64,000 nucleotides of DNA from Azolla caroliniana (lineage: Eukaryota > Plantae > Polypodiophyta), in contig JBHGNT010000004.1 of assembly GCA_043228905.1 (NCBI GenBank), positions 8,680,001 to 8,744,000 of the forward strand, read 5' to 3'. Under the pieces are notes generated by a model. It was given only the letters and a program-made list of their open reading frames with translations, had not been told where the DNA came from and made no database searches. The translations under genes and the position numbers were made by a program. This document shows, piece after piece, positions 3,941 through 61,243 of this stretch (its first letter is position 1; the number at the start of each line of letters is the position of its first letter).

Positions 3941-4603
3941 TGTTGGAAGACAGGTCCCTCCGGATGGGGAGAACCCGACTTCGGAGAGTCGGATGGTGTA
4001 GGCCCGGTATGAACCGGATGGGGAGAACCCGACTTCGGAGAGTCGGATGGTGTAGGCCCGGTATGAACTGGATGAGGAGTACCGGACTGCAGAGAGTCGG
4101 ATGGTGTAGGCCCGGTATGAACCGGATGAGGAGTACCCGACTACGGAGAGCCGGATGGAGCCCATCGAGGCTACATTGGTAAATAGCCGAAAAGTCATAT
4201 TAGTATAAATATGACTTAGGGCAAACTTATGTTTTTTTGAGTAGTCGTTGTTGTTTCTGTTATTATTCTTCGTTGTTGGTGCAAGAAGAAATTAGAGCGC
4301 GTAACTGTATAGAGAGAGAGAGAGACGAGGTCGTTGCCTCTGTTGTAACCGCCGCCTGTGGCGAAGATCTGAGAGCACGAGGTCGTTGACTCGGTGATCT
4401 CACTGTTGTATATTTCTACATAGTGACAGTTTGCAGCTTGTGGGCTGCCGTGGTTTTTCCCCTATTTTGGGGTTTTCCACGTATACCTCCTGTGTACCAT
4501 TTCTCCTCTTTTGTGTCGCGTTTCATTACCTGTTTTTTCTGTGTATGAAAAGAATCTTAGTTGTGGCCGAGCGTCGGACATAAGGAACGTCGAGTTCTCG
4601 ACA
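3941..4603 (+). repeat. 5' LTR of copia B with 54-bp tandem repeat (3960-~4160)
   Basis: TGTTGG...CGACA, nearly identical to 8706-9368. Confidence 0.95.
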
Positions 4604-4605
4604 AG

Positions 4606-4617
4606 TGGTATCAGAGC
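4606..4617 (+). promoter_or_regulatory. Primer-binding site, tRNA-iMet
   Basis: TGGTATCAGAGC 2 nt after the LTR end. Confidence 0.95.
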
Positions 4618-4633
4618 GAGGTTGACACAGAAA

Positions 4634-7600
4634 ATGGACGAATCGTTTGGCGGCATGTTCAAGCTCACCGGCTCCAACTATTCAGTGTGGAAGTCGAAGA
4701 TGAGGGACATGCTCGTGGTTAAAGACCTCTGGCTGCCGGTTCAGTTCGGGGACAAGAGACCGGACAAAATCGACGCCGTGATATGGGAGGTGATGCACAT
4801 GAAGACAACGGCGTACATACGGTGCTTCATGGACATGAGCCTGTACAACAACTTCAATGAAGAGAGCAAGGCTCATGAGCTCTGGGAGAAGATCGGCATG
4901 ATGTTCCAGAACAAAAATGCTGTCAATCAGGCGTCGGTATTCCGGAAGCTTGTAAGACTCCGGTACCAAGATGGCTCCAGCATGGCGGAGCATATGAATG
5001 CCTTCCAGGGGCTGATTCACCAGGCAACTTCATTGGAAGTACCTCTTGCCGATGAAGTCCTAGCGCTACTCCTGCTCGGTTCTCTCCCGGATAGCTGGGA
5101 GACGTTGGTTGTTACTTTGGGCAACGCCGGGCCGGAAGGAAAACGGTTATCCCTGGCAAGAGTAAAGTCGAACTTGCTAGATGAGGAGGCTCGTCGGAAA
5201 GACAAAGATACGAGCTCCGACTCCAAAGCGCTCCTTACCAAATCGGAACGCGGAAGACATAGAAACTGTAGTCCCCAAAACCGAGAGAAGTCGGGGACAC
5301 GATCAAAGTCAAGGGGGAGGCCTACTTGCTTCTATTGCGGCAAGCCGGGACACTTCCAAAAGAACTGTCGGCATTTCCGTAAAGACAAGGAAACCGACGG
5401 TACCGATTCGAAGCAAACCCCGAACCGGAACGTTACAGACCGGAACGGTAAAGACCGGAGGGGGCCGGACCGGAAGGCAACGACGGCAATTGCGGCAAGT
5501 GAAGAGGAGTTGATGCTCATCACCGAGGAGAGTGAGATAAACCATGCCGGCGATGAGATGACCTGGGTGGTAGATTCCGGAGCGTTGTTCCACCTTACCC
5601 CGGACCGGAAATGCTTCTCATCCTACTCATCCGGTGATCACGGCTGTGTCCGGATGGGGAATGAAGGAACATGCCGAATTGTCGGCATAGGAGACGTGTG
5701 GCTGACAACACCAACCGGATGCAAGTTGCTGTTGAAAGATGTCTGACACGTTCCGGAAGTTCGTCTGAACCTGATATCAGCCGGTCGGCTAGATGATGAA
5801 GGCTACACGGGTAGCATCCGGAACGGTGTCATGAAGTTCAGCAAAGGGAGCCTGATTGTGGCTCGGGCCTGGAAGGTAAACACATTGTACCTGATGAATG
5901 CCCAGTTATGTCCGGAAGAAGTGAACGTGGCTTCCGACACTGCCGGTGAGCTGTGGCACAAGAGGCTATGTCACATGAGTGAGAAGGGGATGAAGAGGCC
6001 TGGAGACGACAACCTCATTCCAGTGAAGAACGTGCACTTAGAGAAGTGCACTGATTGTCTGGCCGGTAAGCAGAACCGGACCTCCTTCCGACCAAGGCCA
6101 CCGATGAGACGTAATGCACCACTGGAGTTGGTGCATACGGATGTTTGTCAAGTAGACACGAAGTCACATGCCGGAGCGCAGTACTTCGTGACGTTCATAG
6201 ATGACCACAGCCGGAAGCTGTGGGCCACACCGCTGAAGACGAAGGATCAAGTGTTATCCGTTTTCAAAGAGCTCCACGCGAGAGTGGAAAGAGAAACCGG
6301 CCGGAAGCTGAAGGCGGTTCGAGCAGATAACGGAGGTGAGTACCGGGGGCAGTTCGAGGAGTACTGCCGCTCGAAGGGAATCCGGCTCGAATTTACCGTG
6401 CCGAAGACGCCGGAGCTAAACGGACTGGCCGAGAGGATGAACCGGACCATAATGGAGAGGGTCCGGAGTATGCTAGCGCATGCAAAACTACCCAAGAAGT
6501 TTTGGGCTGAGGCACTGTCGACGGCAACATATGTGATAAATAGATCACCCTTAGTACCCCTGGACGGAGACACGCCACAGAGAGTATGGACCGGTAAGGA
6601 AGTGTCCTACCGGCATCTAAGGGTGTTCGGGTGTCTCGCGTACGTGCATGTAGCAAAGGACTGGAGAGGAAAGCTAGATCCAAAGACCCGGCCATGCATA
6701 TTCCTCGGTTACGGTGACGATGAGTTCGGCTACCGAGTGTGGGACCCGGTCGACAAGAAGATATTCCGGAGTCGAGATATTATCTTCCTGGAGGACAAGA
6801 CGCTCGCCGACTGGGAGTCGGAGAAGAAGATAGTGAACTCCGAGTCGACCGGTAAGGATAGACTCTACAATGAGCAGACCCAACCGGCAAGAGACCGGTT
6901 AGCACTCGAGGAACCAGCCGGTTACGGTGAGGATACCGAACCGGCAGAAGAAGAAGTAGAGGAAGCTGAGACTGGAACCGGTCAAGATACCGAATCGGAT
7001 TCGGATGAAGAGCAAATGGAGGAACCGATTACCGAAGCCCGAAGACGTAGATATCCTCTCAGAGAGAGAAGGGCGCCCCGGAGATTTCCGGATGTAGAGC
7101 ATGTCCTGCTAACCGATGAGGGGGAGCCGGAAAGCCTCGAAGAAGCGAAGGAAGACACCCACAGCCGATAATGGTTAAGTGCCATGCAAGATGAGATGGA
7201 TTCCCTGCATGAGAACCATACGTACGAATTGGTGGAGCTGCCGAAAGAAAAGCGGGCACTCCGAAACAAGTGGGTGTTCAAGTTGAAACCGGGAGATGCC
7301 GGCAACCCCCCGAGATACAAAGCCAGGATCGTGGTGAAGGGGTTCCAGCAGAAGAAGGGCGTGGACTTCGACGAAATATTCGCCCCGGTAGTAAAGATGA
7401 CCTCCATCCGGACGATGCTGAGTATAGCAGCAAGCATGGATCTCGAGGTAGAGCAGTTGGACGTGAAGACGGCATTCCTCCATGGCGACCTTGAAGAGGA
7501 AATCTACATGCAGCAACCGGAAGGATTTGTGGAGAAAGGGAAGGAGCACCTGGTATGCCGATTGAAGAAGAGCCTGTACGGACTGAAGCAGGCTACCCGG

Positions 7601-13896: not shown

Positions 13897-14218
13897 TTAC
13901 CCGTAAGAATATACAGGGAGCCATAAGGGTATGTGTAATGATGTGGTTGATGTGTATGTGTAAAGTAAATGAGTCTGTGAGGATGAGTATGTGTATGGAC
14001 ACATGCACAACTATGTGCATGTGTACAAGAATGCGTAACGGTCTTATTTATAATGGTCATGTAACCGTTACATTGGATGTGTTATACAAACCGCATATGG
14101 GGTATGTAATTGTTAAGAATTAGCTAAGTAATTAAGCAAGGATTAATTAGTACCTAATTATGAGATTAGTTGATAAGCGGAAGATTAAGTGATATGTGTG
14201 TGTATGTGTGTGAGAGGA

Positions 14219-14249
<31 letters not shown>

Positions 14250-16863: not shown

Positions 16864-16901
<38 letters not shown>

Positions 16902-19900
16902 AAAAGAGTTTCTTATTTCATAAAGCAACAATACAACAACCAACCCCACAAAGAGGTTACAAGGTCACTATATATAGTGACTGACTTAGGGCAACTACCC
17001 TTTATGCTAATTACAGAAATGGCCAAAACGGGATAATGTGAATACGTCCATTATACACATGTATTCGACACTCCCCCGTAATGGGCGTATACATGGGTTA
17101 TCTGAGATTACAGGTATAAACTTAGGTTCTCGGACATATCAGCTTTGTTTGAGTCGGCAGGGTCCGAAGGCAGAAGACCGAACTGGTCGGGTCGGAACAG
17201 TCGAAGCCGATCATTAAGGAACTGATGTCGGTTGTCGGGAACCATTCTGCTCTGTGTCCGGCTCTAACCGGACTGGTTTGTCGTTACGCCCATCTGATGC
17301 CGAAGAGACCGAAAACGGTCTGCCGAAAGACATTTGGTCATTCCATCTGCGACATTGTCGGTTGTGGATATTTTCTCTAGACCGATTTTCCCTGAGATGA
17401 CGCAGTCCCGAACGAAGTGATATCGAACGTCGATATGTTTGGAGGCGTTGTGGTGAACCGGATTTTTCGACAAGGCAACAGCACCTTGACTGTCGCTGTA
17501 GACAACTGGAGCCGAGTCATGGTCGACTTGTCGAAACGTGTGCGCCAGCCGACCGAGCCACAAAGCTTCTTTTGCTGCGTCGGACGCAGCTACATATTCT
17601 GCTTCGGTCGTTGAGGTTGCTGTGCACTCTTGAAGTTTCGACTTCCACGAGATTGCTCCATTGCCGAATTTGAAGCAGTATCCGGTTGTTGATTTCCGAC
17701 TGTCTATACAGCCGGCGAAGTCCGAGTCGGTGTAACCGACTACGCCTGAGGTTCGGTTCGGACCGAAAAGAATGCCGTGATCTTTTGTGCCAGCCAGATA
17801 TCTGAACACATGCTTGACTGCGTTCCAATGCGATCGGCCAGGATTGTGCATAAATCTGCTAACGACTCCTACGGCATGAGAGATGTCAGGCCGTGTCGCG
17901 ACCATCAGGTACATAAGGGAGCCGACTGCCGGTGCATACGGTACCGACTTCATATCTTCCCCCTCCGAACCGGATGTCGGGCAGTCTCGCTGAGAGAGCC
18001 GAAGATTCATAGGGAGTGGGGTTGAAGCAGATTTGGCTGATTGCATGTTGAAGCGTTCCAAGACACGTCCGATATAGTCGGTCTGAGACAAAAAAAGATG
18101 TCGTTTATCGCGATGCCGACTAATCTTCATGCCAAGGATGTGTCGTGCCGGACCGAGGTCCTTCATGGCAAACTTCAACCGCAGTTGCCGAATGAGATCG
18201 GTGAGTTCGCCCGCGTGGCGTCCAGAGATTAGCATGTCGTCCACGTAGATGATGAGGAAGATGGGTGATCCATCTTGAGCTGTGTTGGTGAAGAGACAAT
18301 GGTCCTCACCGCTTTTGGAGAAGCCGATCGATTGGATGAAGTCGTCGAACTTCTTGTACCATTGTCGTGGTGCCTGTTTGAGGCCGTATAGACTCTTCCT
18401 GAGTCGGCAGACTAGATGTTCTTGGCCGGTGGCCACGAAGCCTTTCGGCTGCTCCATATAAATTTCCTCGTCAAGATCACCATGGAGGAATGCTGTTTTG
18501 ACATCTAGCTGAATCAGCTCCAAGTTGTCGGCTGCCACTACGCCGAGTAGGAAACGAAGGGTTGTCATTTTCACCACTGGTGAAAAAATCTCGTCGAAGT
18601 CGACGCCGTATTCTTGTCGGAAGCCCTTCGCAACCAATCTGGCCTTGTACTTTGGGGTGGTCGAATCAGACGTCTCTTTTAGTCGATAGACCCACTTGCA
18701 AGGAAGAGCACGTCGGTTCCTCGGTAATTCGACCAAATCCCAAGTCTTGTTTGCCCGAATGGAGTGCATTTCCGACTCCATCGCCAGATGCCAGGTGGCT
18801 GAATCGACAGATGTCGATGCTTCTTCGTAAGACGTCGGTTCGCCGGCGTCGGTGAAGAAAATTCCAGGAGAATATCTCTCCGGAGGTTGCGACAGTCTCT
18901 CGGATCGTCGAAGTAGGATTGGACTGGTCGCATCGGGTATCGAGGTCGGATGGTCCGAAACCGAATCATTCGGCTGTGCCGAGTCAGAGTTGTCTGAGTC
19001 GGTAGTGTAAGGTTCAGCTACCCGTGAAGCTGACCGTGTGTTGAGAGCGGGGCCTTCTTGAAGGGTCGGCACATCGGAAAATGTTACCCTTCGGACTTCG
19101 ATCGGTTTTTCGACAGATGGATTCATAGCCGACTCGTTGAACACAACGTCCGAACTTCGAACGATTTGTCTGCGTTCGGGGTCCCAGAGTCGGTATCCCA
19201 TTTCGCCGTCGGATCCATATCCAAGGAAAATGCATTTCCTGGACCGAGGTGCAAGTTTGCGGCGATCATCTTTCGGAATAAGGGCATACGCCTCGCATCC
19301 GAAGATCCTCAGCTTGTCGTAATTCGGCTTTCTGCCGATCCATAGTTCCTGAGGAATTTGAAGTCCTAGAGGTCTACTTGGCGACATATTGATTATGTGT
19401 ACTGCCGTGAGTAGAGCCTCTGCCCAGAAGCCATCCGACAGTCCGGAGTGTTGGAGCATGGAAACTATCCGTTCTTGGATTGTCCGATTCATTCGCTCTG
19501 CAATCCCGTTTTGCTCCGGACTGTGTGGTGCCGTAAATTCACGTCGGATGCCGCGTTGTCGGCAGAATTTGACGAATTCATCGGATTTGAACTCTCCCCC
19601 ATTGTCTGTCCGAAGGCATTTCAGCTTTCGGTCGGTTTGATTTTCTACCATAGCGAGCCAATCTGAGAAGATCGAGAAGACACGATCTTTGGTGCGAATC
19701 GGATAAGCCCACACCTTTCGAGTCGAATCGTCAATAAAACTGACGAAGTAAGATGCACCGCCTAGAGACTGATGCGGCATTGGGCCACAGACGTCCGAAT
19801 GGACTAAGTCGAGAGGTCTCGTTTCTCTTGGTGCTGATGTCGGGTGTGATGCGGCTGCTTGTTTGCCATACTGGCAGTGCTCGCAAAATTGATGGTCCGA

Positions 19901-21938
19901 GAAGGAGAGTTTGGGGATGTATCCGGCTCTGGATAGGTGCGTGATGCCGGCCTTGCTGAGGTGTCCTAATCTTCGGTGCCATAGTGATGACACAGGAATA
20001 TCCACCAAAAACAGGTTACCCTCTCTGAGCGTAACATGTAGCGGATACAATGAGTGTATCTTAGGTCCTCTAGCAAGCAGGAGGTTCCCCCTGTGGAGTG
20101 TCCACCCTCCCGAAGAAAAGCCGGCACGAATGCCGTCTTCATCCAGTTGTCCGACTGAGATCAATGGCCTTGAGAGCTCGGGTACATGTCGGACATTGTG
20201 GAGTACAAGTGTAGAGCCACCTGCAAGGTTGAGCTCTACTGTGCCGATTCCGATGATGTCACAGTGTTGTGAGTTGCCGACCCGAACTGAGTCGGAGTGA
20301 CGGATCGTATATTGCCGAAATTGGGACCGATGAGGAGTCACATGAAATGACGCACCCGAATCTAAGAGCCATGTGCTTGACTCTTCAGTCGTGAGTAGAA
20401 CTTCTGATCCGACTGGATTTTCGATTGATAGTATATTCGGGTCGTCTGGTAGCACATCAGCTGAGAAGCTGACGTAGTTGACCTCCTCATGCCGGCCACT
20501 CTTCTTGTTGTTCTTGTTCTTGAGTGCGCGGCAGTCGGCCTTGATGTGTCCGGGTTTCTTGCAATAGTTGCAGATTCGGTTATCCCGTGACTGGCTCCGT
20601 CTTCGCTGATTGTTCGGCGGCCGTGAGGAATCTCTTCCTCGTATGTTCGATCGGTCTGTCGAACCTTGTACTACGTAAGCGTCGTCTGTTGAGTCTTTGG
20701 CGAAAGACTTTCTCCGAGCTGCTTCAGTCAGGATTGCGCTCGTGACTTCGGAGTATTTAACAGCCGTGGTTGACGCGTTGCACACAGTTGTGACGAAAGT
20801 TTCCCATGATGAGGGAAGGCTGCTCATGAGTATCATTGCTCTGAGCTCATCCTCGATTGCCGTCCCCTGTGACGAGATTTGGGAGCTTATGCTTTCGTAC
20901 TCATTGAGGTGTGCTTGAACCGAATCGGATTCTTTCATCCGCAAGTTGTAGAGGCGCCGGATCAGAAACATCTTTGTTGCGGCGACCTTCTTTTCGTAAG
21001 TGTCCGACAGTGTTTTCCACAGTTCGAATGCTGTCGTACACGATTGCACCGTAAAGTATACCGATTCCGATAGGTGCATCCGAATCGTGGCGCGGACGAT
21101 TCTGTCCAGCTTCTGCCACTCAATTGGTTTGTATCCTTCTGGAGGTTCTTCATTTTCGATGGGATCGATCTGCCCCTTGACTATGAGATAGTCCTGCATT
21201 TGTTCCTTCCAGAAGTTGAAGTTCGATCCATCGAACTTTCGTAGACTCATTTCTGACGAGCCGGATGTTGATGCCATCAAATTCGGTTTCAGTTGACGAA
21301 GCTCGGTTCGGAGTTGACTACGAACCTTGTTGGAGTGCAGCCGGTTGGCTCACCCGATATCGTTCTAGTCGGATTTGAACCCGAGTCGGTTCGGCTTCGG
21401 AACTTGCTCGAATTGACTCCGGTAACTTGAGGGACAGAACCGACTGGTCTTCCCGAATGTTGCCGAGTCGGAGTGAGCCCGGTTCGTTTCGGATATATAT
21501 GCCGAATACCAATTATTAAAACCGATTATCTGAACCGATTTTGCTTCGGTTGACTGCAGCGACGAGAGAGACGGATCCGACTGATCCTCCCGAATGTCGA
21601 TCAGCCAGATGAAGCATGAATTTGGGTTGTTGTCAGGGTTGCACAAGGGGATTTCACCTCGAGCGGTTACGATCACGGGGAGCGGAGTACAACCTGCTGG
21701 CTTACTCCAAACAAAGATGATCTAACGCGATGAGATGCAAACCTGGTTTTTCTTCTTCTTCTCTCTTCTTCGAATGACGCAGGGAACCGAATGCAGAGAC
21801 GACGGCCGACAGCGGATTGAAGAACCGACTACTGTGCAGGCTCTGATACCAGATGTTGGAAGCAATGTCGTCTGTGCGGAAGATCTTGAAGCACTCGATT
21901 CCTGTTTATTCCCTGTGTATGACAGAATGTAGGTCGTT

Positions 21939-21974
<36 letters not shown>

Positions 21975-22143
21975 AAAAGAGTTTCTTATTTCATAAAGCA
22001 ACAATACAACAACCAACCCCACAAAGAGGTTACAAGGTCACTATATATAGTGACTGACTTAGGGCAACTACCCTTTATGCTAATTACAGAAATGGCCAAA
22101 ACGGGATAATGTGAATACGTCCATTATACACATGTATTCGACA
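16779..22143 (-). mobile_element. Intact, very young Ty1/copia copy D
   Basis: LTRs 16779-17070 and 21854-22143 are identical by eye except one GA unit. Perfect TSD AATAT. PBS (iMet) at 21840-21851. PPT at 17071-17077. Single 1338-aa ORF. Confidence 0.98.
17264..21280 (-). CDS. copia Gag-Pol polyprotein (Gag, ZnK, PR, GAG-pre-integrase, IN, RT, RNase H)
   Basis: Uninterrupted ORF with CNYCKKPGHIKADC, WLLDSGAS, LVHSDVCGP, LRTDNGGEF, YKARLVAKGF, YVDDML, TDSDFAG, ADGMTK. Confidence 0.97.
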   Translation of the reverse strand: MMASTSGSSEMSLRKFDGSNFNFWKEQMQDYLIVKGQIDPIENEEPPEGYKPIEWQKLDRIVRATIRMHLSESVYFTVQSCTTAFELWKTLSDTYEKKVAATKMFLIRRLYNLRMKESDSVQAHLNEYESISSQISSQGTAIEDELRAMILMSSLPSSWETFVTTVCNASTTAVKYSEVTSAILTEAARRKSFAKDSTDDAYVVQGSTDRSNIRGRDSSRPPNNQRRRSQSRDNRICNYCKKPGHIKADCRALKNKNNKKSGRHEEVNYVSFSADVLPDDPNILSIENPVGSEVLLTTEESSTWLLDSGASFHVTPHRSQFRQYTIRHSDSVRVGNSQHCDIIGIGTVELNLAGGSTLVLHNVRHVPELSRPLISVGQLDEDGIRAGFSSGGWTLHRGNLLLARGPKIHSLYPLHVTLREGNLFLVDIPVSSLWHRRLGHLSKAGITHLSRAGYIPKLSFSDHQFCEHCQYGKQAAASHPTSAPRETRPLDLVHSDVCGPMPHQSLGGASYFVSFIDDSTRKVWAYPIRTKDRVFSIFSDWLAMVENQTDRKLKCLRTDNGGEFKSDEFVKFCRQRGIRREFTAPHSPEQNGIAERMNRTIQERIVSMLQHSGLSDGFWAEALLTAVHIINMSPSRPLGLQIPQELWIGRKPNYDKLRIFGCEAYALIPKDDRRKLAPRSRKCIFLGYGSDGEMGYRLWDPERRQIVRSSDVVFNESAMNPSVEKPIEVRRVTFSDVPTLQEGPALNTRSASRVAEPYTTDSDNSDSAQPNDSVSDHPTSIPDATSPILLRRSERLSQPPERYSPGIFFTDAGEPTSYEEASTSVDSATWHLAMESEMHSIRANKTWDLVELPRNRRALPCKWVYRLKETSDSTTPKYKARLVAKGFRQEYGVDFDEIFSPVVKMTTLRFLLGVVAADNLELIQLDVKTAFLHGDLDEEIYMEQPKGFVATGQEHLVCRLRKSLYGLKQAPRQWYKKFDDFIQSIGFSKSGEDHCLFTNTAQDGSPIFLIIYVDDMLISGRHAGELTDLIRQLRLKFAMKDLGPARHILGMKISRHRDKRHLFLSQTDYIGRVLERFNMQSAKSASTPLPMNLRLSQRDCPTSGSEGEDMKSVPYAPAVGSLMYLMVATRPDISHAVGVVSRFMHNPGRSHWNAVKHVFRYLAGTKDHGILFGPNRTSGVVGYTDSDFAGCIDSRKSTTGYCFKFGNGAISWKSKLQECTATSTTEAEYVAASDAAKEALWLGRLAHTFRQVDHDSAPVVYSDSQGAVALSKNPVHHNASKHIDVRYHFVRDCVISGKIGLEKISTTDNVADGMTKCLSADRFRSLRHQMGVTTNQSG

Positions 22144-22743
22144 AATATTAGGGGCAGTTCGAGGAGTACTGTCGGTCGAAGGGAATCCGGCTCGAATTCA
22201 CCGTGCCGAAGACGCCTGAACTAAACAGGTTGGCCAAAAGGATGAACCGGACCATAATGGAGAGAGTCTAGAGCATGCTCGCACATGCCAAGCTACCCAA
22301 GACGTGTTGGGCTGAGGCGCTGACGACGGCGACCTATGTGATAAACAGATCACCCTCAGTACCCTTGGATGGAGACTCACAGCAGAAAGTATGGACCGGT
22401 AAGGATGTGTCTTACCGGCATCTGAAGGTGTTTGGGTGTCTCGCATACGTGCATGTGGCGAAGGACAAGAGAGAAATACTAGATCCGTAGTCCCGACCAT
22501 GCATATTCCTTGGATACGGCAATGATGAGTTCAGTTACCGGGTGTGGGATCTGGTCGACAGAAAGGTGTTCTGGAGTCGAGACATAGTCTTCATGGAAGC
22601 CAGGACCATTGCCGACTGGGAGTCGGAGAAGAAGGTAACAAACTCCAGATCATGCATTGAAAACCGGCTTGAGGAAAAAAGGATATACCCGGTTGAAAAC
22701 CCGATGTTAGTCGGTAACCAGATGACACTCGACGAACCGGCCG

Positions 22744-22862
22744 AATACAGACAGGAAACCGAACCGACCGAAGAAGAAGAAGACACCGGAACCGGACAAA
22801 ATCCTGAATCGGATGAGGATGACGAACAAATGGAGGAACCGGTAGTCAGAAACCATGGACGG
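22744..22862 (+). repeat. Left copy of the 117-119 bp target-site duplication of the Penelope-like insertion
   Basis: Identical to 26139-26257. The terminal GG is shared with the telomeric tract. Confidence 0.95.
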
Positions 22863-22887
22863 GTTTAGGGTTTAGGGTTTAGGGTTT
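22861..22887 (+). repeat. Interstitial plant telomeric repeat (TTTAGGG), ~4 units
   Basis: GGGTTTAGGGTTTAGGGTTTAGGGTTT exactly at the insertion junction. Confidence 0.95.
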
Positions 22888-22890
22888 GAA

Positions 22891-23637
22891 TTGGAAGGAT
22901 ACAATAGAGAGCGAAGATCTTACTTCGATAGCGGCTACACGTGCGGCGATGGTGGACGATTGTCACACCATAACGGCGGCTACATGAGCTGTGGCGGTGA
23001 TTATCCTACGGGTCGATACGGGAGGTCCATCCAATGCGAAGGCCGTACATCTTTTGGAAGCGGCACACGTGCCAACATAAGACAAGAAGTGTATCCCCAT
23101 GGCGGCTGTGCAGGAGATCATGCAAGCCATGGCACGAACGACCTTCCGTCTTTCCCTCGCGGCCCTCCTCCTCCTCCTCTCCTCCCCACCTCATCCCTGC
23201 AGACAATTTCAAACATACCCTCTCACTTCCCATATTCGTTTAACCCTAATCACGCCCCTCCCCCCCCCTCCTTACTTCCTACAAATTTGAGGCATGCCCC
23301 CCCTTTATTTTCTATAAACCCCCCTCATACCCCTCCCCCATTTTTTAACCATGCCCCTATGCATTTCCCCCCTAATAACCCCCACAACGTTTCCCTATTT
23401 CCAAACTATACCCCTCCCCCTTTTCATGCATTTCCTACACATACCCCCCCCTTCTTTACTCATAACTCCCCTTCTACTTCTAGTAGATTTCAATATTCTA
23501 CCGCACCCTCAAAATTTCCCCCACACTTATATGAAATCCCTCATAGAAAACAACCTATCCGTACTCACAATAATCGGCCCCTTCCCACAAAACTACAAAC
23601 TTTCCCATGTAATAATGTTAGGACAAAAAACGTGTAG
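22891..23637 (+). CDS. PLE ORF1, Gly/Tyr-rich then Pro/His/Phe-rich low-complexity protein, possibly 5'-truncated
   Basis: Open from the telomere junction (first ATG at 22984). Ends just past an A-AAA-AAC site overlapping the RT frame. Confidence 0.6.
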   Translation: MEGYNRERRSYFDSGYTCGDGGRLSHHNGGYMSCGGDYPTGRYGRSIQCEGRTSFGSGTRANIRQEVYPHGGCAGDHASHGTNDLPSFPRGPPPPPLLPTSSLQTISNIPSHFPYSFNPNHAPPPPSLLPTNLRHAPPLFSINPPHTPPPFFNHAPMHFPPNNPHNVSLFPNYTPPPFHAFPTHTPPFFTHNSPSTSSRFQYSTAPSKFPPHLYEIPHRKQPIRTHNNRPLPTKLQTFPCNNVRTKNV

Positions 23638-23683
23638 CTAGGCGTGCCAAACGCGATAGTAAACAGTTTCGGCACGCCATACA
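23625..23683 (+). promoter_or_regulatory. Putative -1 programmed ribosomal frameshift signal (ORF1 to RT)
   Basis: In-phase A-AAA-AAC at 23625-23631. Stem GGCGTGCC (23641-48) / GGCACGCC (23671-78). Confidence 0.65.
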
Positions 23684-23741
23684 TCCCACGAAACGTCTCT
23701 TTTACCTTCTCGATAGACCTACTTCTACTTTAGATACTTTC

Positions 23742-25604
23742 ATGTGGTTAGGACGTCATACACCTAATTTTCCCTTCTCCCCATATGTGAAAAAGACCCA
23801 TAGTAGGAAACCCCGTAATAAATTTTGGACACCTCTCCTTAATAAACCTAGAATTAGTAGGATCCACAACCACTCTAATTATTCCCTCTCTAAACATGAG
23901 ACACAACTCCTTAGCCTAGGTTTGAAACACATCCTCCCATCTTCTCCACCATCATCCCCTACCCTACTTAAAGAATTTGATAGCCTAAGTAGGACCCTTC
24001 GACTTAAACATTTTTTTAAAGATGTGGATAATTTGCCCCAAAATCCCTTTAAGCTACCTAACCCTAGTTGGCAACCTCCTACTAAGTACACTCCCTTAGA
24101 AAACATTATATCTAAACACCAAACTATCTTTAGGGACACACTTCATACACTCAAATTAAAACCCACTAGGATTGCACCTCACTTATCACTAGCCTTACAA
24201 TCTCTTAAGAAAAACAACAAAATCATAATCCTACCTGCTGACAAGAATGTTGGAGTGTGTGTTCTGGATAAGGACACGTACTATAACAAAGCTATAGAAC
24301 ACCTTTCTGATACTAATACATATAAAAAAGTCTCCCACTATCCACTTGAGGAATTATCCTATAGATTGAAAAACATTGTTAATAACCATCTTGGTACCCT
24401 ATCCAACATAGAAGCCAATTACATACTACGTAAACCCTCAAAAGGGTACAAAGTATGCAATATCTATTTCCTCCCAAAACTCCATAAAAACCCAATAGGT
24501 TTTAGACCTATTTGCTCATACAATAACTCCCTTTTTGAACAAACATCAAAATGGCTTCACCACCAACTCATGCCTATCCTTCTCCTTCAAAAGCAATATT
24601 TGAAAGACTCACATTCCCTTGTCCAGACTTTAGAACATCTCAACCCACCCCCTAATAGCTTTATCTTCACCTTTGATGTTGAATCTCTATATCCCAGCAT
24701 ACCCCCTAGGTTAGGACTCCAAGCTTTACGAAAAATGATTACCCCACATTTTTCATCTTCTAAAACTAACCTTATCTATACACTTAGCGCACTCACATTA
24801 GAATATCACTTTCTATCCTTTGATGACATGATCTATCAACAAGTCAAGGGTACAGCCATGGGTAGTAATTTTTCTGTAGTTTATGCATGCCTATTCTTAG
24901 CTCACTTAGAGAACTCCCAGCCATCACACCCTAATCTTTTTTATTTCACTAGATATATAGATGATGCATTCGGGATATGGACAGGTACTAAACCCGAATT
25001 AGAAAATTACCTCCAGTTCTATAACACCTCCACTAATAACTGCATCAAAATTACCATCACCACTTCTCCCTTTAGATTACCGTTCTTAGATTTATGGATT
25101 AACCTAAAGAATTCACATTTCTCCTTTAATTGCTACCAAAAGCCCCAAAATGCCTACCAATATCTCTCATTCTCGTCAGTTCACCCCTTTCACTTAAAAC
25201 GTCATTTTATTATTAATGAACTAAAACGATACCTAATTAGAGAAAGTACCCCCTTAGGTTTCCTTCGAATGAAAAAACTATTTTTTAATAGATTAGTTAA
25301 GAGAGGGTATCCCCTTTCTTTTATATTAGAGAATTATAAAAAGGTGCCATTTAACGCTAGGAAATCACTAGTATTTAGTAGAAAACCTAAAAGTACCCTT
25401 ATACCTGTCATCTTCAAACTTAGGTATACGAAAGATACCCCTAGATTAGGAATTCACGACATGCTAGAAAACCTCCACGCAGATTTAGCCACACATCCCC
25501 AACTATCCGAACTACCGCGACCCTTCATATGTTGGACTAAGTCTAAGTCCATTCATTCCCTTCTCGTCAAAACTAAATATAAATCCATAAAAACTCCCAC
25601 TTAA
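23742..25604 (+). CDS. Penelope-like reverse transcriptase (frame open from 23622), no endonuclease domain
   Basis: PLE motifs LLSLGLK, ILPADKN, YFLPKLHK..FRPI, FDVESLYPSIP, YQQVKGTAMGS, RYIDD, LPFLDL, YQKP..QYL...S.HP, thumb RGYP. Stop follows the linker. Confidence 0.93.
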   Translation: MWLGRHTPNFPFSPYVKKTHSRKPRNKFWTPLLNKPRISRIHNHSNYSLSKHETQLLSLGLKHILPSSPPSSPTLLKEFDSLSRTLRLKHFFKDVDNLPQNPFKLPNPSWQPPTKYTPLENIISKHQTIFRDTLHTLKLKPTRIAPHLSLALQSLKKNNKIIILPADKNVGVCVLDKDTYYNKAIEHLSDTNTYKKVSHYPLEELSYRLKNIVNNHLGTLSNIEANYILRKPSKGYKVCNIYFLPKLHKNPIGFRPICSYNNSLFEQTSKWLHHQLMPILLLQKQYLKDSHSLVQTLEHLNPPPNSFIFTFDVESLYPSIPPRLGLQALRKMITPHFSSSKTNLIYTLSALTLEYHFLSFDDMIYQQVKGTAMGSNFSVVYACLFLAHLENSQPSHPNLFYFTRYIDDAFGIWTGTKPELENYLQFYNTSTNNCIKITITTSPFRLPFLDLWINLKNSHFSFNCYQKPQNAYQYLSFSSVHPFHLKRHFIINELKRYLIRESTPLGFLRMKKLFFNRLVKRGYPLSFILENYKKVPFNARKSLVFSRKPKSTLIPVIFKLRYTKDTPRLGIHDMLENLHADLATHPQLSELPRPFICWTKSKSIHSLLVKTKYKSIKTPT

Positions 25605-25754
25605 TACTATATGCCTTTTATATCCCACCCCCACACCCAGCCCCACCTATCACTTATCATGTACATACATATAACCCCCCTCTAACCCACTTTCACTAAC
25701 CAATCCATTACCTATCACAATTCCCCGTTTCCCTCTCTCCCATCATTAAACTCC

Positions 25755-25758
<4 letters not shown>

Positions 25759-25815
<57 letters not shown>
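25759..25815 (+). repeat. (CT)n microsatellite in the PLE 3' region, followed by TATATAA at 25824-25830
   Basis: Read directly from the sequence. Confidence 0.9.
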
Positions 25816-25817
<2 letters not shown>

Positions 25818-25851
25818 TCCCCCTATATAAACCTACCCTCTTGTTGTAAAT

Positions 25852-25903
25852 GACCTTGGCACTGATGAGCTCTACCTAGAGCGAAACTAGTTTGCACAAG
25901 GTC
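25852..25903 (+). ncRNA. Type I hammerhead ribozyme (minimal, palindromic stem III)
   Basis: Stem I GACCTTG-GCA / TGC-A-CAAGGTC, core CTGATGA, stem II GCTCTA/TAGAGC, GAAAC-TA-GTT. Predicted cleavage after 25892. Confidence 0.9.
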
Positions 25904-26138
25904 TTTCTAATGAAAATTTCTTAAGCTTTTCTCTTTTCTCTTTTCTCACTCACTCTTCTCTTCTTCTCTTCTTCTTTCATCTCATTCTCTCATTCTCTTT
26001 TACTCTTGGTCACCTCTAATCCTACTCACCTTAGTTTCACTTGCATCATTGCTTTATTTCTTTTCTTACTCTTCCCATATCATCTCAATAGTTGTGCTAG
26101 TTCGCTCGCACTCCTTGTCACGATCCTACGGTCATAGC

Positions 26139-26257
26139 AATACAGACAGGAAACCGAACCGACCGAAGAAGAAGAAGACACCGGAACCGGACAAAATCCT
26201 GAATCGGATGAGGATGACGAACAAATGGAGGAACCGGTAGTCAGAAACCATGGACGG
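26139..26257 (+). repeat. Right copy of the target-site duplication
   Basis: Identical to 22744-22862. The copia pol sequence continues afterwards. Confidence 0.95.
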
Positions 26258-29200
26258 AGATATCCTCTCCGGGAGAGAAGAGCCCCCCAAAGATTTCGGT
26301 ATGCATAACATGTGTTGCTGACCGATGAGGGGGAGCAGGAAAGCTTTGAAGAAGCAAGGGGAGACACCCATACCCGCAAGTGGTTGAGTGCCATGCACGA
26401 TGAGATGGATTCCCTGCATGAGAACCACACATACAAATTGGTGGAGTTGTCGAAAGGAAAGAGGGCACTCCAGAACAAGTGGGTGTACAAGTTGAAACCG
26501 AGACACGTCGGAAATCCACCAAGGTATAAGGCCCGAATCGTGGTAAAGGGCTTCCAGTAGAAGAAAGGAGTGGACTTCGATGAGATATTTGCCCCGGTAG
26601 TAAAGATGACATCAGTCCGGATGGTATTGGGCAAAGCGGCAAGCATGGGCCTCGAGGTAGAGGAACTGGACATCAAGACGGCATTCCTACACGGAGACGT
26701 CGAAGAAGAGAGCTACATGCATCAACCGGAAGGATTTGAGAAGAAAGGGAAGGAGCACTTGGTGTGCCGGCTGAAGAAGAGTTTATACGGACTGAAGCAA
26801 GCTCCCCGGCAATGGTACCGGAAGTTTGACTCCTTCATGACCGATCAAGGATACCACAAGACGTAGGCCGATCACTATGTGTTTGTGAAGAAATTTGATG
26901 GAGGAGATTTCCTGATATTGCTCCTATACGTGGACGACATGTTGATTGTCGGCCCTTGACTGGACCGTCTCAGTGAAAGACTTAGGTCCAGCAAGATAGA
27001 TATTGGGTATGCACATCATCCGGGACCGGTCGAAGAAGCAATTGTCGTTCTCAAAGGAAAAGTATGTGACAAAGGTATGTCAGCGGTTTAACATGTTAGA
27101 AGCAAAACCGGTTGGATCGACACTCCCGGCAAAATGCAGATTATCCGGTAAGCAAACCCCGAAGACAAAGGCAGAGAAGGCGGATATGATGAAGATTCCA
27201 TATGCCTTTACGGTCGGGAGGTTTATGCACGCAATGGTGTGTACTCGACCAGATATTGGTTACACAATCAGAGTGGTGAGTCGGTTGATGACCAACCCCG
27301 GAAAAGAGCACTGGAATGCGGTAAAATGGATACTCCGGTACTTGAAGGGAACTTCGAGTATGTGCCTCCGATTCGGCTCCGGTAAACCCCTCATGGAAGG
27401 CTTTACCGATTCGGATATGTCGGCTCTACTGCGACATCGATGTCGCATTCGCCCGAGCACATGCACTACCCGCCATATGCCTCTCAAAACCCATTCCTAT
27501 TGAAGCCATTGATGGGTGTGTCCTCTCATCAAGAGTAATTACCAAGATTACAATCCCATTAGGGCTTCGTGTGGGCTCCCACCAGGAGGAGCTCCCCTTT
27601 TACCTCATCGCATCCTTTGGGCATGCGATCATCTTAGGACTATCGTGGCTGGAAGCGCACAATCCAATAGTGGATTGGTGCAATCACTCGATCACATTTA
27701 ATGAGCCAGGATGCTCGTGCACAACTATGAAGGCCAATTCCGTTTCACATCCTTCGGAGACGGTTGATCCCGACTCGGCTACTCCACCCTTAGTTCATCA
27801 CCCACTCGCCATTTGTGGAGCTACTTCTAACACACTCCACGCTATTCCTGACAAGTATAAAGACTTCTCCGATGTATTTGAGAAACGTAATGCAGATCGT
27901 ATGCCTGAACACCGGCTCTACGACTATCCCATCGATCTTCAAGAAGGCGTGTCTCCACCCTTTGTTTCTCTATATGCATTGTCTGTAGGAGAGCTAAAGG
28001 CCCTTCGAGTGTATCTCGATGAGAACCTCGTGAAAGGATTTATTCAACCTTCTAAGTTGTTGGCCGGGGCCCCCATATTATTCATGAAGAAGAAGGACGG
28101 CTCTCTACGCTTATGTGTAGACTATTTGGGGTCTAAACAAACTCACTGTGTGCAACCGCTATCTGATCCCCGAACTCCTCGACTGGCTCCGCACTATGCA
28201 TGTCTTCTCCAAAGTTTATCTGCATGGTGCGTACAATTTGGTCTGCATCAAGCCCAATGATGAATGGAAAACCGCCTTCCGAACACGATATGGGCATTTC
28301 GAATATAAGGTAATGCCTTTTGGTCTTACTAATGCCCCAATTGTTTTTCAACATATGATGAACGATATATTTCATGAATATCTCGATCATTTTGTGGTTA
28401 TGTACCTGGATGATATTCCCATTTTTTCGCCAAACATGGCAGAGCACACCTATCAAGTGCAATTAGTTCTTGCAAAACTTTGGGAGCACGACCTTTATGC
28501 CAAAAGTGAGAAATGCGAGTTTGACCGTACCTCGATTGAATTCTTGGGCTACATCATCTCGCCCAATGGCATCGCAAGGGATATGAAGAAGGTTTCCGTC
28601 ATTCAGGGTCATTCGGGAGTGGGTGACTCCAACTTGACTTAAAGATGTACAATCCTTCCTTGGCTTCGCCAATTTTTACCATCACTTCATCCAGGGGTTT
28701 TCCACTCTAGCCCATCCTCTTATCGCCCTCACGCACAAAGGTACTCCCTTTCTATGGACCTTGCCGGCATAAAATGCGTTCAACTCTCTCAAACACACAT
28801 TCACCATTGCCCCTGTGCTCCTACATGCCAACCCCACAAGACCCTTCCATGTCGAAATTGATGCCTCAGACTTCGTCATTGGCGTCATTTTATCCCAGGC
28901 TGATTATTCCAACATAATGCACCCGGTGGCTTACTACTCTTGTAAATTCACGACATCCAAAATAAATTATCCAATATACGACAAGGAGCTTGCTGTTATC
29001 ATTGCCTCCTTTGAAGAATGGCACCCCTATTTAGCCAGAGCACAGCACCATGTCCAGGTAGTGACTGATCATAAGAATTTAATTTATTTTTCCATTACTT
29101 GTACTTTGAATCGAAGGCAGGCTCGTTGGTCGACATTTCTCGCCGACTATGATTTTGAGATTGTATTTCGACCTGGTGGCCAACATGGGATGGCCGATGC

Positions 29201-31788: not shown

Positions 31789-31820
<32 letters not shown>

Positions 31821-38914: not shown

Positions 38915-40114
38915 TTACATGGAATGGGGAGGAAGGCCGCATGAGCCACCGCGCTGGACGGTCATGGAGAATGAATCCTCGCAGTCTGAAGAGATGCCAT
39001 ATGACTGGGCCAGTGACAGGAAACCCTCCACTACCGAAGGGTCGGGTTTCCACGACCGGGCGATGATGAAGATGGATTTCTCTGCTATGTTGCCATCGCT
39101 GTCATTCACGCACGAATACACGAGCGCGGCTTCGTTGTGGCTGTCCACTGCCAGCACCCAATATGGCTTCATAATCACTTCCCCCTTCACTTTCACCTGT
39201 AGCTTGCCTCCCTTAATTTGCACTCCCTCGCCTTCCACCTTGTACGCTTTGGCGCCTTGTGCTACCGTGATCGATCTACCGTTGCCTTTGGCCAGCGACC
39301 GTGCCGTCTTCCGCAGCTGTATCGCACCCTTCTCGATATTCTTCGCGCTCTTCACCAGCTCTTTCCCTGCTAGCCTTATCTTCTTCCCCACCGCCTTCAT
39401 TGATGGCATTGCCTCGACCTTCCTCCCCGCATCCTCCAGAAGCTTCCCTGCAAGCCGCAAAGCTCCAGCATCCTCCGCCTTAAGCTTCTCTGCATTTACC
39501 TCCATCTTCTCTGTGGTGTTTGCTAGACTTACCGTGTAATTGGCTTGACTCAACTGGTTGAGATAGCCTTGAATGTGGCCGATCCTCCCGGCCGCAGAAT
39601 CTAGTGCTGCCTCTCCAATTTTAGCGGCGTCCGTCACGTTCTTCAACAATGCGGGGTGATCCTTGAGCAATTCAAGAGCATGGTCATTGATGTGGCCGAT
39701 GACGTGGCACGAGCTTCGGGCAGAGTTACAGACGCCGAAGGAGGTGGTGCCGGCATAATAGATGTCAGCCACACCAGCGGGGCGGAGGATGGAGAGGGCA
39801 CTGTTGAGGACGGAGAAGAGGGTTTGGTGTGAAGGGGAGTGGCCCCTTAGCTCGTACTTGGCGCGGGCGCAAACGGAGCCGGGTTGGTCCCTGAACTGGG
39901 ACCTGGCGCTGATACCGATCTGGAACCAACTGCCCGCGAAGGCCGTGAGGTTGATGGCGTCGAAGGTTGGGGGTGTGGGGCAGCCCTTGGCGGTGCCATG
40001 CGTCCTGGTGCAGAAGCCATGCTGAGGATGGGCTTGCACACAGACGACGAAGAAGAAGCAAGCCACCATCACCATTCTGATGAGAGACATGAGTGCATGA
40101 GCAGCAGAAGCCAT
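38915..40114 (-). CDS. Secreted ApoD-like lipocalin with a large internal helical insertion (host gene, intronless)
   Basis: Signal peptide (VQA-HP). SCR1 CPTPPTFDAINLTAFAGSWFQI, VCARAKY, SCR2 PYWVLAVD..AALVYSC, SCR3 IFIIARS, C-terminal Cys. Clean 399-aa GC-rich ORF. TATAAAT ~75 nt upstream. Confidence 0.78.
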   Translation of the reverse strand: MASAAHALMSLIRMVMVACFFFVVCVQAHPQHGFCTRTHGTAKGCPTPPTFDAINLTAFAGSWFQIGISARSQFRDQPGSVCARAKYELRGHSPSHQTLFSVLNSALSILRPAGVADIYYAGTTSFGVCNSARSSCHVIGHINDHALELLKDHPALLKNVTDAAKIGEAALDSAAGRIGHIQGYLNQLSQANYTVSLANTTEKMEVNAEKLKAEDAGALRLAGKLLEDAGRKVEAMPSMKAVGKKIRLAGKELVKSAKNIEKGAIQLRKTARSLAKGNGRSITVAQGAKAYKVEGEGVQIKGGKLQVKVKGEVIMKPYWVLAVDSHNEAALVYSCVNDSDGNIAEKSIFIIARSWKPDPSVVEGFLSLAQSYGISSDCEDSFSMTVQRGGSCGLPPHSM

Positions 40115-46830: not shown

Positions 46831-46868
<38 letters not shown>

Positions 46869-60700: not shown

Positions 60701-61243
60701 GTAGCTTTCCCTTCGTCTCTTCAGTGAAGATGTGACTAATTGTATTTGGGTTCCTTAAGCTTGGATCTTTTGCAACTTCCTTCATCTTTTGCCAGTTATC
60801 TTCCGGTAGCGGAACTGCAACTGGCTTGATCTTCCTATCCACGGTTTTATATTTTGTGTTGACTTCGACTTCCTCTATCAAGATGCCTCGATGATATTCA
60901 TCGATGATAGTATACATGTTGACGGAGTTAACCGAAATCACATGTTGATGGTGAGGATAGCTCAAATCCACGACTTCCTCGATTTCGCCGATGGTGTCGT
61001 TAAATGAGGCTTCCTCCATAATATATGACACGAATTCTTCTTCTTTGATTATGCTTTCTTCTTTCAGCACCTCCTCGAAGTCTTGTATTTGACACTTTTC
61101 CTTCTTGTTGAGTAGTCTAAGTTTGCATGTGCCGCCAGGTGTGACGCATGTTGCTTCTCCTTGCAATCCACGCACTTTGCTTCCTTGTGGGGACTTATGA
61201 TTGCTCGGACTATTTGTGCCCCATGCTTCAATAGTCCGCTTTA
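57800..61243 (-). pseudogene. gypsy pol (RT, RNase H, integrase) with a few stops/frameshifts
   Basis: LRFIQDLQPVN, DLYSGYDQF, PFLDDI, VDTSP..KRELWGI, GHRGI...CKEC, ANGKVERGH. Confidence 0.9.

Follow-up and report, generated by a model that had tools for sequence, protein, structure and literature searches.

In a 64,000-nucleotide stretch of the Azolla caroliniana genome (contig JBHGNT010000004.1, positions 8,680,001 to 8,744,000; hereafter the window, in which positions are numbered from the first letter), we found a young, 5′-truncated, non-autonomous copy of a Penelope-like element (PLE), a retrotransposon of about 4.7 kb with two open reading frames (ORFs) and no endonuclease (EN). PLE reverse transcriptases (RTs) are the closest relatives of telomerase, and the nuclease-less branches are thought to persist only by attaching to chromosome ends. 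The Azolla copy lies inside a degenerate Ty1/copia gene between two perfect target-site duplications (TSDs), and carries at its truncated 5′ end a short telomeric tract (coordinates in Table 1). What is new here is the combination of an internal site, a perfect duplication of 119 bp, a telomeric tag of reversed polarity and a 3′ end without telomere-complementary repeats. The explanation that we favour overall, and consider probable, is nuclease-independent target-primed reverse transcription (TPRT) at a pre-existing staggered break, with one target end extended by telomerase.

As an initial annotation of this DNA had stated, the RT frame is intact and contains the catalytic motif YIDD, which we locate at 24954–24965. 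Its match to the Pfam RVT_1 profile (27.4 bits) fell just below the cut-off; it is a PLE RT nonetheless, on the strength of its overwhelming homology to other PLE RTs. An exhaustive HMMER search found 17,669 related representatives at E ≤ 0.001, and five homologues among the more distant matches of a word-indexed search (P0050, P0061, P0068, P0069 and P0084) have a C-terminal GIY-YIG domain. The combination of an RT with a GIY-YIG endonuclease at its C terminus is the canonical PLE architecture. The Azolla RT shares precomputed Pfam matches to DUF8422 and HTH_animal with these GIY-YIG-carrying homologues. We built a hidden Markov model (HMM) of GIY-YIG from the endonuclease regions of five such homologues, which as positive controls scored 164–207 bits against it. 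The model found no GIY-YIG (E > 2) in the six frames of positions 22000–27000 or in sister loci L001–L014 (L numbers denote loci of relatives). Close relatives occur only in ENA metagenome contigs. Plant relatives, both close and distant, have RTs of 560–640 amino acids, all without GIY-YIG. We therefore rejected the idea that the Azolla copy is a deletion derivative of an EN-containing element: its relatives all stop at the same place, and the domain is missing from L001–L014 as well. A C.C pattern, the CxC motif that marks the PLE-X group, was likewise absent from the whole RT. The Azolla RT gene differs from that of L001 at 2.6% of nucleotides with a dN/dS of 0.18, and the family is under purifying selection. 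At least four families, with 62–97% protein identity, occur side by side in related metagenome samples, and the lineage is or was recently active.

We placed the RT in a midpoint-rooted tree of 242 database proteins, whose labels gave the presence of EN and, for a few proteins, the organism, without named reference clades or a TERT outgroup. The Azolla RT fell, with 99% support, in a plant clade of 28 sequences that all lack EN, among them Selaginella P0024, which is flanked by telomeric repeats, Ginkgo P0028 and several Cryptomeria proteins. This clade is nested within a larger one of 174 sequences, again all without EN, so that the absence of the nuclease is ancestral to a large clade rather than a local deletion. 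Across the midpoint root from the Azolla RT were 38 of the 40 EN-containing proteins; the other two, P0050 and P0060, formed a small group just outside the 174-sequence clade. The family of the Azolla element is part of a clade of land-plant PLEs without a nuclease, which also contains telomere-associated elements of Selaginella and Cryptomeria. The initial annotation had asked whether the missing GIY-YIG might be present in sister copies, and its absence there makes it a trait of the lineage. The suggestion that this is an undescribed system did not survive, because such PLEs have already been described in Selaginella and the Azolla RT groups with the Selaginella element.

A 17-mer scan of the metagenome contigs returned 118 stretches, most of them chance bacterial matches and 17 of them real copies of the element. 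L001 and L097, on contigs from a related plant, align to positions 22885–26140 at about 92.5% nucleotide identity and extend more than 1.1 kb further upstream. In L099, a full-length unit comprises a 21-nucleotide 5′ untranslated region (UTR), an ORF1 of 722 amino acids and an RT of 620 amino acids, and totals about 4.7 kb; full-length relatives have a terminal repeat with a (CT)n microsatellite, a TATA box, a hammerhead ribozyme and a tail of about 250 nucleotides. Measured against L099, the ORF1 remnant of the Azolla copy begins at codon 480. About 1.46 kb of the 5′ end is missing, and with it the conserved domain of ORF1 and any promoter copy further upstream, and because of this truncation the copy is non-autonomous and was dead on arrival. 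The initial annotation was thus right that an ORF1 lies upstream of the RT, but overlooked that only its C-terminal part remains. Its description of a recently active plant lineage agrees with the young TSD and the dN/dS of the RT; it does not extend to this inactive copy.

The N-terminal part of ORF1 that the Azolla copy has lost, about 290 amino acids, is conserved across families and detectable in Cryptomeria; the ORF1 of L005 has 819 amino acids. A homologue search with ORF1 gave only three close matches. We found no Pfam match for ORF1 and no PDB sequence match for its N-terminal domain. The best structural model of this domain contains three long helices (core predicted local distance difference test (pLDDT) score 80–93), for which Foldseek returned only non-significant helical-bundle matches (E > 0.27). 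These results led us to reject ORF1 as a hidden nuclease. As modelled, the N-terminal domain resembles the coiled-coil ORF1 of nuclease-less PLEs (PMC6431247), and is unlike a nuclease.

Two compositional features of the family were also observed. ORF1 contains runs of (CCCTAA)n hexamers on the sense strand in every close family, partly as 30-bp repeats, that encode Asn-Pro repeats. CCCTAA is the reverse complement of TTAGGG and one base shorter than the 7-mer telomere repeat of the plant; the runs could be coding slippage or a relic of telomere pairing. In addition, the sense strand of the Azolla element (22888–26138) is very poor in G (11.5% G against 29% C, with about 25% of each in the flanks), and the same strong G-poverty extends across the whole of locus L005. 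This makes the antisense or cDNA strand rich in G, as is the telomeric G-strand that it would continue in a canonical end attachment.

The inserted sequence spans 22863–26138 (3,276 bp), and the direct repeats that bound it are identical at 119 of 119 positions. In two paralogous copia copies within the window (at about 6921–7039 and about 303–420), the same segment is present once. Since both repeats map to this one segment, they represent a true TSD that arose with the insertion, and the perfectly duplicated flanks reported earlier are specific to it; for the same reason, we rejected a pre-existing tandem duplication in the copia family. The TSD has not accumulated a single mutation, which indicates that the insertion is young. 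On the upstream side, the host sequence has a Pfam SH3_retrovirus match at 22275–22487 and is colinear with the paralogous copia copies in the window, and on the downstream side RVT_2 matches were found at 26312–26557 and 26570–26863. The insertion, described as interstitial in the initial annotation, indeed splits the integrase part from the RT part of one degenerate copia pol gene, and the copy does not have the chromosome-end location of the Athena/Coprina type.

Between the left TSD and the element proper lies the telomeric tract, which also agrees with the initial annotation. Its three TTTAGGG units (22864–22884) are the sole telomeric tract in the 64 kb, and none of 100 shuffles matched it. 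Tandem Repeats Finder (TRF) reports 3.9 perfect 7-mers at 22861–22887, a span that runs two bases into the target because the last GG of the target is in register with the repeat. At the truncation point the Azolla copy reads ...AGGGTTT/GAATTGG and its relatives read ...GGAATTT/GAATTGG, so the tract does not come from the element, with which it has TTT in common. It is missing at the homologous position of L001, L097 and L099, and we therefore rejected the possibility that it is part of the element or its promoter.

We derived the canonical polarity of such tracts from the logic of priming and then verified it on Selaginella and Cryptomeria loci. A cDNA that starts from a G-overhang and then receives a telomerase cap at its end has to give the sense strand (CCCTAAA)n-element-(CCCTAAA)n. 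C-rich telomeric tracts flank the element on both sides in Selaginella L010 and lie upstream of a partial repeat in L017; in L011, about three CCCTAAA units stand between a non-telomeric flank and a copy whose truncation lies in ORF1. Kilobase C-rich arrays lie directly against truncated RT fragments in the Cryptomeria loci L137, L138 and L140, of which L137 (Cryptomeria japonica BSEH01000007.1) is 13–35 kb from the start of an 862-Mb scaffold; L138–L140 are telomere-repeat contigs. L137 also has G-rich tracts (3–1261) that face the C-rich tracts (2800 onward) head-to-head, an arrangement that may reflect a fusion or an assembly artefact. Among the relatives examined that have a tract at the 5′ end, the Azolla copy is the only case with the G-rich telomeric strand on the sense strand; the canonical C-rich cap is not present at its 5′ truncation point. 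Because the polarity is opposite to that of a canonical cap, the term ‘telomere-capped’ does not apply to it in the Athena/Coprina sense. The reversed polarity rules out the classical route, in which telomerase caps the end of the cDNA, and indicates that the top strand of the target was extended: the telomeric repeats can only have come from addition to the 3′ end of that strand or from copying of a G-rich RNA. We also rejected capture of a fragment of a canonical telomeric copy, as rearranging such a copy in any way does not yield this polarity, and inversion of the whole block cannot convert a C-rich sense tract into a G-rich one.

At its 3′ end the element is complete. L001 and L056 end a few nucleotides beyond the Azolla terminus, at ...CACAACAACAGT, and L083 and L060 (the 84% family) end at ...GACAATAAAA(G), in each case followed by unrelated flanks. 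As independent copies share this end within a few nucleotides, it is the natural terminus of the family; variation by a few bases is as expected for microhomology priming. The 3′ tail has neither a poly(A) stretch nor repeats of CCCTAAA or CCCTAA, and so lacks the reverse-complement telomeric repeats that accompany the hammerhead in the Athena/Coprina type. In a sister family of 62% identity (L011 5680–6130), a long tail downstream of the hammerhead has many CCCTAAACCCT motifs; these resemble the reverse-complement telomeric repeats of Athena/Coprina and are absent from the family of the Azolla element.

In L097 and L096, the 3′ terminus runs directly into the 5′UTR of the next unit, which in relatives often belongs to a different family, and chains of RT, repeat, next ORF1 and RT were found in L015, L051, L069, L097, L099 and L009, as in the pseudo-long terminal repeat (pLTR) tandem organization of PLEs. 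The Azolla copy has the 3′ repeat only and no upstream repeat. Two further copies bear on insertion into chromosome interiors. In L056 (612–700), a truncated copy of the same family is joined, without a change of frame, to a copia RNase H region where the two are similar over a short stretch (...TIALS/NIEAKY...), which gives a chimeric ORF of 421 amino acids; no TSD was found within 671 bp, and there is no telomeric tag. L136 is another interstitial, 5′-truncated copy without a tag. A telomeric tag is thus an occasional feature of such copies rather than an obligatory one.

For a duplication of this geometry, the 119-bp segment must have had a 3′-OH on the bottom strand at its left edge and one on the top strand at its right edge. 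In the sequence of events that we favour, the element RNA would have been reverse-transcribed from the pre-existing bottom-strand 3′-OH at the left edge of the future duplication, primed through 1–2 nucleotides of microhomology near the RNA 3′ end and without an element-encoded nuclease. cDNA synthesis would have ended early, within ORF1. The free top-strand 3′ end (...GG, 119 nucleotides downstream) may then have been extended in register by telomerase with about 25 nucleotides of TTTAGGG repeats, and this G-rich tail may have paired by way of TTT/AAA with the end of the cDNA and acted as primer for the second strand. Fill-in of two 119-nucleotide single-stranded stretches would have produced the long target duplication. 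A role for telomerase, which the initial annotation had raised, is on this evidence reasonable.

Several points weigh against this explanation. We infer the mechanism from a single complete event, and the participation of telomerase from the sequence of the tract; both junctions are known from assembled sequence alone. We found no relative with the same tract polarity or a long TSD, and the 671 bp searched in L056 held none. Two complementary overhangs of 119 nucleotides would normally remain annealed, and the origin of the staggered ends is unexplained. The label ‘Coprina’ applies only by association with the telomere-flanked Selaginella element. The general statement in the initial annotation that the lineage integrates at internal breaks was also too strong, since it would rest on one complete event and two partial ones (L056 and L136).

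The telomeric repeats could have been acquired without telomerase if the element RT, at ORF1 codon 480, jumped to a UUUAGGG RNA resembling telomeric repeat-containing RNA (TERRA), copied about 3.5 repeats and then met the target through CC/GG microhomology. The microhomologies at the junctions (TTT on the element side and GG on the target side) fit such template switching equally well, PLE insertions are known for complex tandem structures that have been ascribed to template jumps, and the precise abutment of heterologous units, 3′ end to 5′UTR, in relatives implies that jumping is frequent. In relatives, however, the jumps lead to other element RNAs rather than to telomeric RNA, a second example was not found, and G-rich telomeric transcripts in Azolla are putative; we regard this route as unlikely. 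An origin during replication seems to us similarly improbable. Here, a stalled nascent strand would have come off its template, copied element RNA and a telomeric template and re-annealed 119 nucleotides back, in the manner of microhomology-mediated break-induced replication (MMBIR) or fork stalling and template switching (FoSTeS), or sister chromatids broken 119 bp apart would have been joined through the cDNA. The apparent TSD would then be a re-copied or doubly inherited segment and not a filled-in staggered cut, which would account for a long, arbitrary and perfect duplication without the need to separate two nicks 119 bp apart; junction microhomology of 1–3 nucleotides is also typical of such events. 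There is no direct evidence for this origin, it still needs a source of telomeric repeats, and the natural 3′ terminus of the element fits ordinary TPRT equally well.

The element may also not be truly independent of a nuclease, if staggered nicks were made in trans by a long interspersed nuclear element (LINE), an EN-containing PLE or a host enzyme. A clean TSD is what nuclease-dependent TPRT leaves, and the length of PLE TSDs varies with the distance between first- and second-strand cleavage (PMC8557442). We consider this very unlikely because 119 bp is far above the usual length, neither an EN-containing PLE nor a GIY-YIG turned up in the sister loci or the window, and nicking in trans would explain neither the telomeric tag nor L056, which has neither cap nor TSD. 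That an assembly error or chimeric read produced both the insert and the duplication is extremely unlikely. The region is a nest of repeats whose junctions come from the assembly, but the 3′ boundary of the insert is its family's natural terminus, its start is a telomeric tag that relatives do not have, and the duplicated 119 bp are exactly the host sequence expected at an insertion; an artefact would not recreate such boundaries. Nuclease-independent TPRT with a telomerase-extended target end thus stands as the best explanation of the locus.

The terminal repeat retains its TATA box and hammerhead, both noted in the initial annotation. The TATA box lies 38 or 39 nucleotides upstream of the CUGAUGA core in the five closest families (the Azolla element, L001, L002, L015 and L011) and 53 nucleotides upstream in the more distant L017. 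In the predicted hammerhead, helix I pairs 25852–25861 with 25893–25903, followed by the CUGAUGA core (25862–25868); helix II pairs 25869–25873 with 25878–25882, followed by GAAA (25883–25886); and helix III is minimal, with 2 bp within the palindrome ACUAGU. Cleavage is predicted between 25892 and 25893. The Rfam HH9 score was 20.7 bits, under the gathering threshold of 52, and the fold z-score was −3.4. In an alignment of 11 plant PLE hammerheads, 94% of cells pair (27–46% in slid controls), compensatory changes occur in 5 of 10 pairs, and none of 500 shuffles did as well; helices I and II covary, and the CUGAUGA core, GAAA and the GUU cleavage triplet are invariant. The palindrome and minimal helix III of PLE hammerheads have been read as a sign that they act as dimers (PMC4209133). 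Together, the TATA box and the hammerhead would make up the module that gives the terminal repeat its promoter and its RNA processing, probably functional only in copies preceded by another repeat, so that with its solitary 3′ repeat the Azolla copy would not transcribe its own coding region. The (GA)n/(CT)n microsatellites scattered in the window, each about 30 bp long (14212–14248, 16868–16898, 21943–21971, 31792–31820 and 46836–46866), give rise to spurious ‘inverted repeats’ with the (TC)29 tract of the element.

Compared with known PLEs, the Azolla element lacks the C-terminal GIY-YIG of Penelope/Poseidon, including the conifer ‘Dryad’, and shares with the Athena/Coprina type the absence of an endonuclease domain anywhere in the element and the presence of two ORFs with a structural, coiled-coil-type ORF1, of which this copy keeps the C-terminal remnant only. 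A telomere-associated, EN-deficient PLE of Selaginella moellendorffii was described by Gladyshev & Arkhipova 2007, according to the passages of PMC4209133, PMC12477314 and PMC8557442 that cite that work, and a 2025 review lists Selaginella as the plant example of nuclease-less, hammerhead-bearing, telomere-associated PLEs (PMC4209133, PMC12477314). Such Coprina-type PLEs, which occur in plants, fungi and protists, and the Selaginella element have, like the Azolla element, an RT without GIY-YIG, an upstream ORF1, a type I hammerhead in the terminal repeat and 5′-truncated copies with short telomeric repeats, and it is with P0024 that the Azolla RT groups. The Azolla copy differs from them in its interstitial position, its 119-bp TSD, its G-rich sense tract (C-rich in Selaginella and Cryptomeria) and a 3′ tail without reverse-complement telomeric repeats. 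The Athena elements or Terminons of bdelloid rotifers also lack EN and have a coiled-coil ORF1 (PMC6431247). Athena lives at chromosome ends, where (ACACCC)n immediately downstream of its hammerhead pairs with G-overhangs (PMC6431247), whereas the Azolla copy is internal, has a non-telomeric tail of 246 nucleotides after the hammerhead and belongs to a family of about 4.7 kb that is not giant.

The EN-lacking ‘PLE-X’ in Chlamys occurs genome-wide in Chara braunii and specifically in 28S in Selaginella, and inserts internally by unknown means (PMC8557442). Like the Azolla element, it is a plant-lineage PLE without an identified nuclease that inserts internally and has a canonical hammerhead. 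PLE-X has a CxC motif and an N-terminal CxCX1-8C extension, whereas the Azolla RT has no CxC and its partner ORF1 is helical as modelled. Endonuclease-independent retrotransposition of LINE-1 at DNA lesions and dysfunctional telomeres was reportedly described by Morrish et al. in 2002 and 2007. Such events share with the Azolla insertion a pre-existing 3′-OH, junction microhomology, 5′ truncation and a link to telomeres, but usually lack a TSD and join the 3′ end of the element to telomeric DNA; the Azolla copy has a long TSD and telomeric repeats at the 5′ junction, on the strand of the target. R9, a non-LTR element of rotifers specific for ribosomal DNA (rDNA), is said to have an exceptionally long TSD (Gladyshev and Arkhipova, 2009, cited in PMC8557442). 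Its target duplication, like that in Azolla, is of about 120 bp, but R9 reportedly encodes its own endonuclease, is site-specific and belongs to an unrelated RT clade.

Table 1. Features of the Azolla element and its insertion site (window positions unless a locus is named).
Feature	Position	Strand	Basis
Degenerate Ty1/copia pol, upstream host part (integrase C-terminus / SH3-like, stop codons)	22275..22743	+	Pfam, paralogue alignment
TSD, left copy, ending ...GGACGG	22744..22862	.	100% identical to 26139-26257
Non-element tract G(TTTAGGG)3TTT, G-rich on element sense strand, last TTT shared with element	22863..22887	+	Sequence, TRF, relatives
ORF1 remnant in frame (last ~250 codons, at the C terminus), without its own start codon, rich in proline and of low complexity	22885..23637	+	Protein alignment to L001; L099
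PLE-type RT ORF, intact, 620 amino acids, no endonuclease domain, no CxC motif	23742..25604	+	ORF and homology
(TC)29 microsatellite, 3′ region, also in relatives	25758..25815	+	TRF, relatives
TATA box of terminal-repeat (pLTR) promoter (putative), 38 nucleotides upstream of CUGAUGA	25824..25831	+	Conservation
Type I hammerhead ribozyme (predicted)	25852..25903	+	Fold, covariation
3′ tail, 246 nucleotides, ending at the natural terminus of the family, ...ACGGTCATAGCA	25893..26138	+	Comparison with relatives
TSD, right copy	26139..26257	.	Identity to left copy; single-copy in copia paralogues
Host copia pol, downstream part (start of RVT_2, degenerate)	26258..26866	+	Pfam
(CCCTAA)n runs in relatives, in the ORF1 region that the Azolla copy lacks	L001 753-776; L005 1128-1337; L015 5481-5540; L097 799-834, 5421-5606; L099		

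Copia and gypsy fragments are nested throughout the window (examples are 19–2067, 4511–7171 and 59256–61175). On the minus strand at 17264–21280, 1.5 kb from the insertion, lies an uninterrupted Ty1/copia polyprotein of 1,338 amino acids (gag, protease-like barrel, integrase and RVT_2). A 399-amino-acid ORF on the minus strand at 38915–40114 had only a sub-threshold lipocalin-like match, and a weak Rfam sR14 match at 20802–20846 was taken as chance.

These findings extend the nuclease-less clade beyond the usual single example of Selaginella: it is widespread and recently active in land plants, with members in a lycophyte, Ginkgo, a conifer and Azolla. How plant-lineage PLEs without a nuclease insert internally has been stated as an open question (PMC8557442), and the Azolla locus keeps both junctions of a very recent internal insertion, apparently primed without an element nuclease. 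One speculative possibility, to which we give a low probability, is that the nuclease-less PLEs of this plant lineage regularly reach chromosome interiors with the help of telomerase: at a lesion or replication intermediate, telomerase or the telomerase-related element RT would extend the free upstream 3′ end and so provide a G-rich primer for the second strand. If so, its footprint would be G-rich tags on the sense strand together with long target duplications; it would represent a form of cooperation between a retrotransposon and telomerase that is distinct from end-capping, and would answer how EN-lacking PLEs spread genome-wide. Should the pattern recur in the Azolla genome, it would offer a testable mechanism tying together break repair, telomerase and retrotransposition; should it prove unique, the locus would stand as a documented exception.

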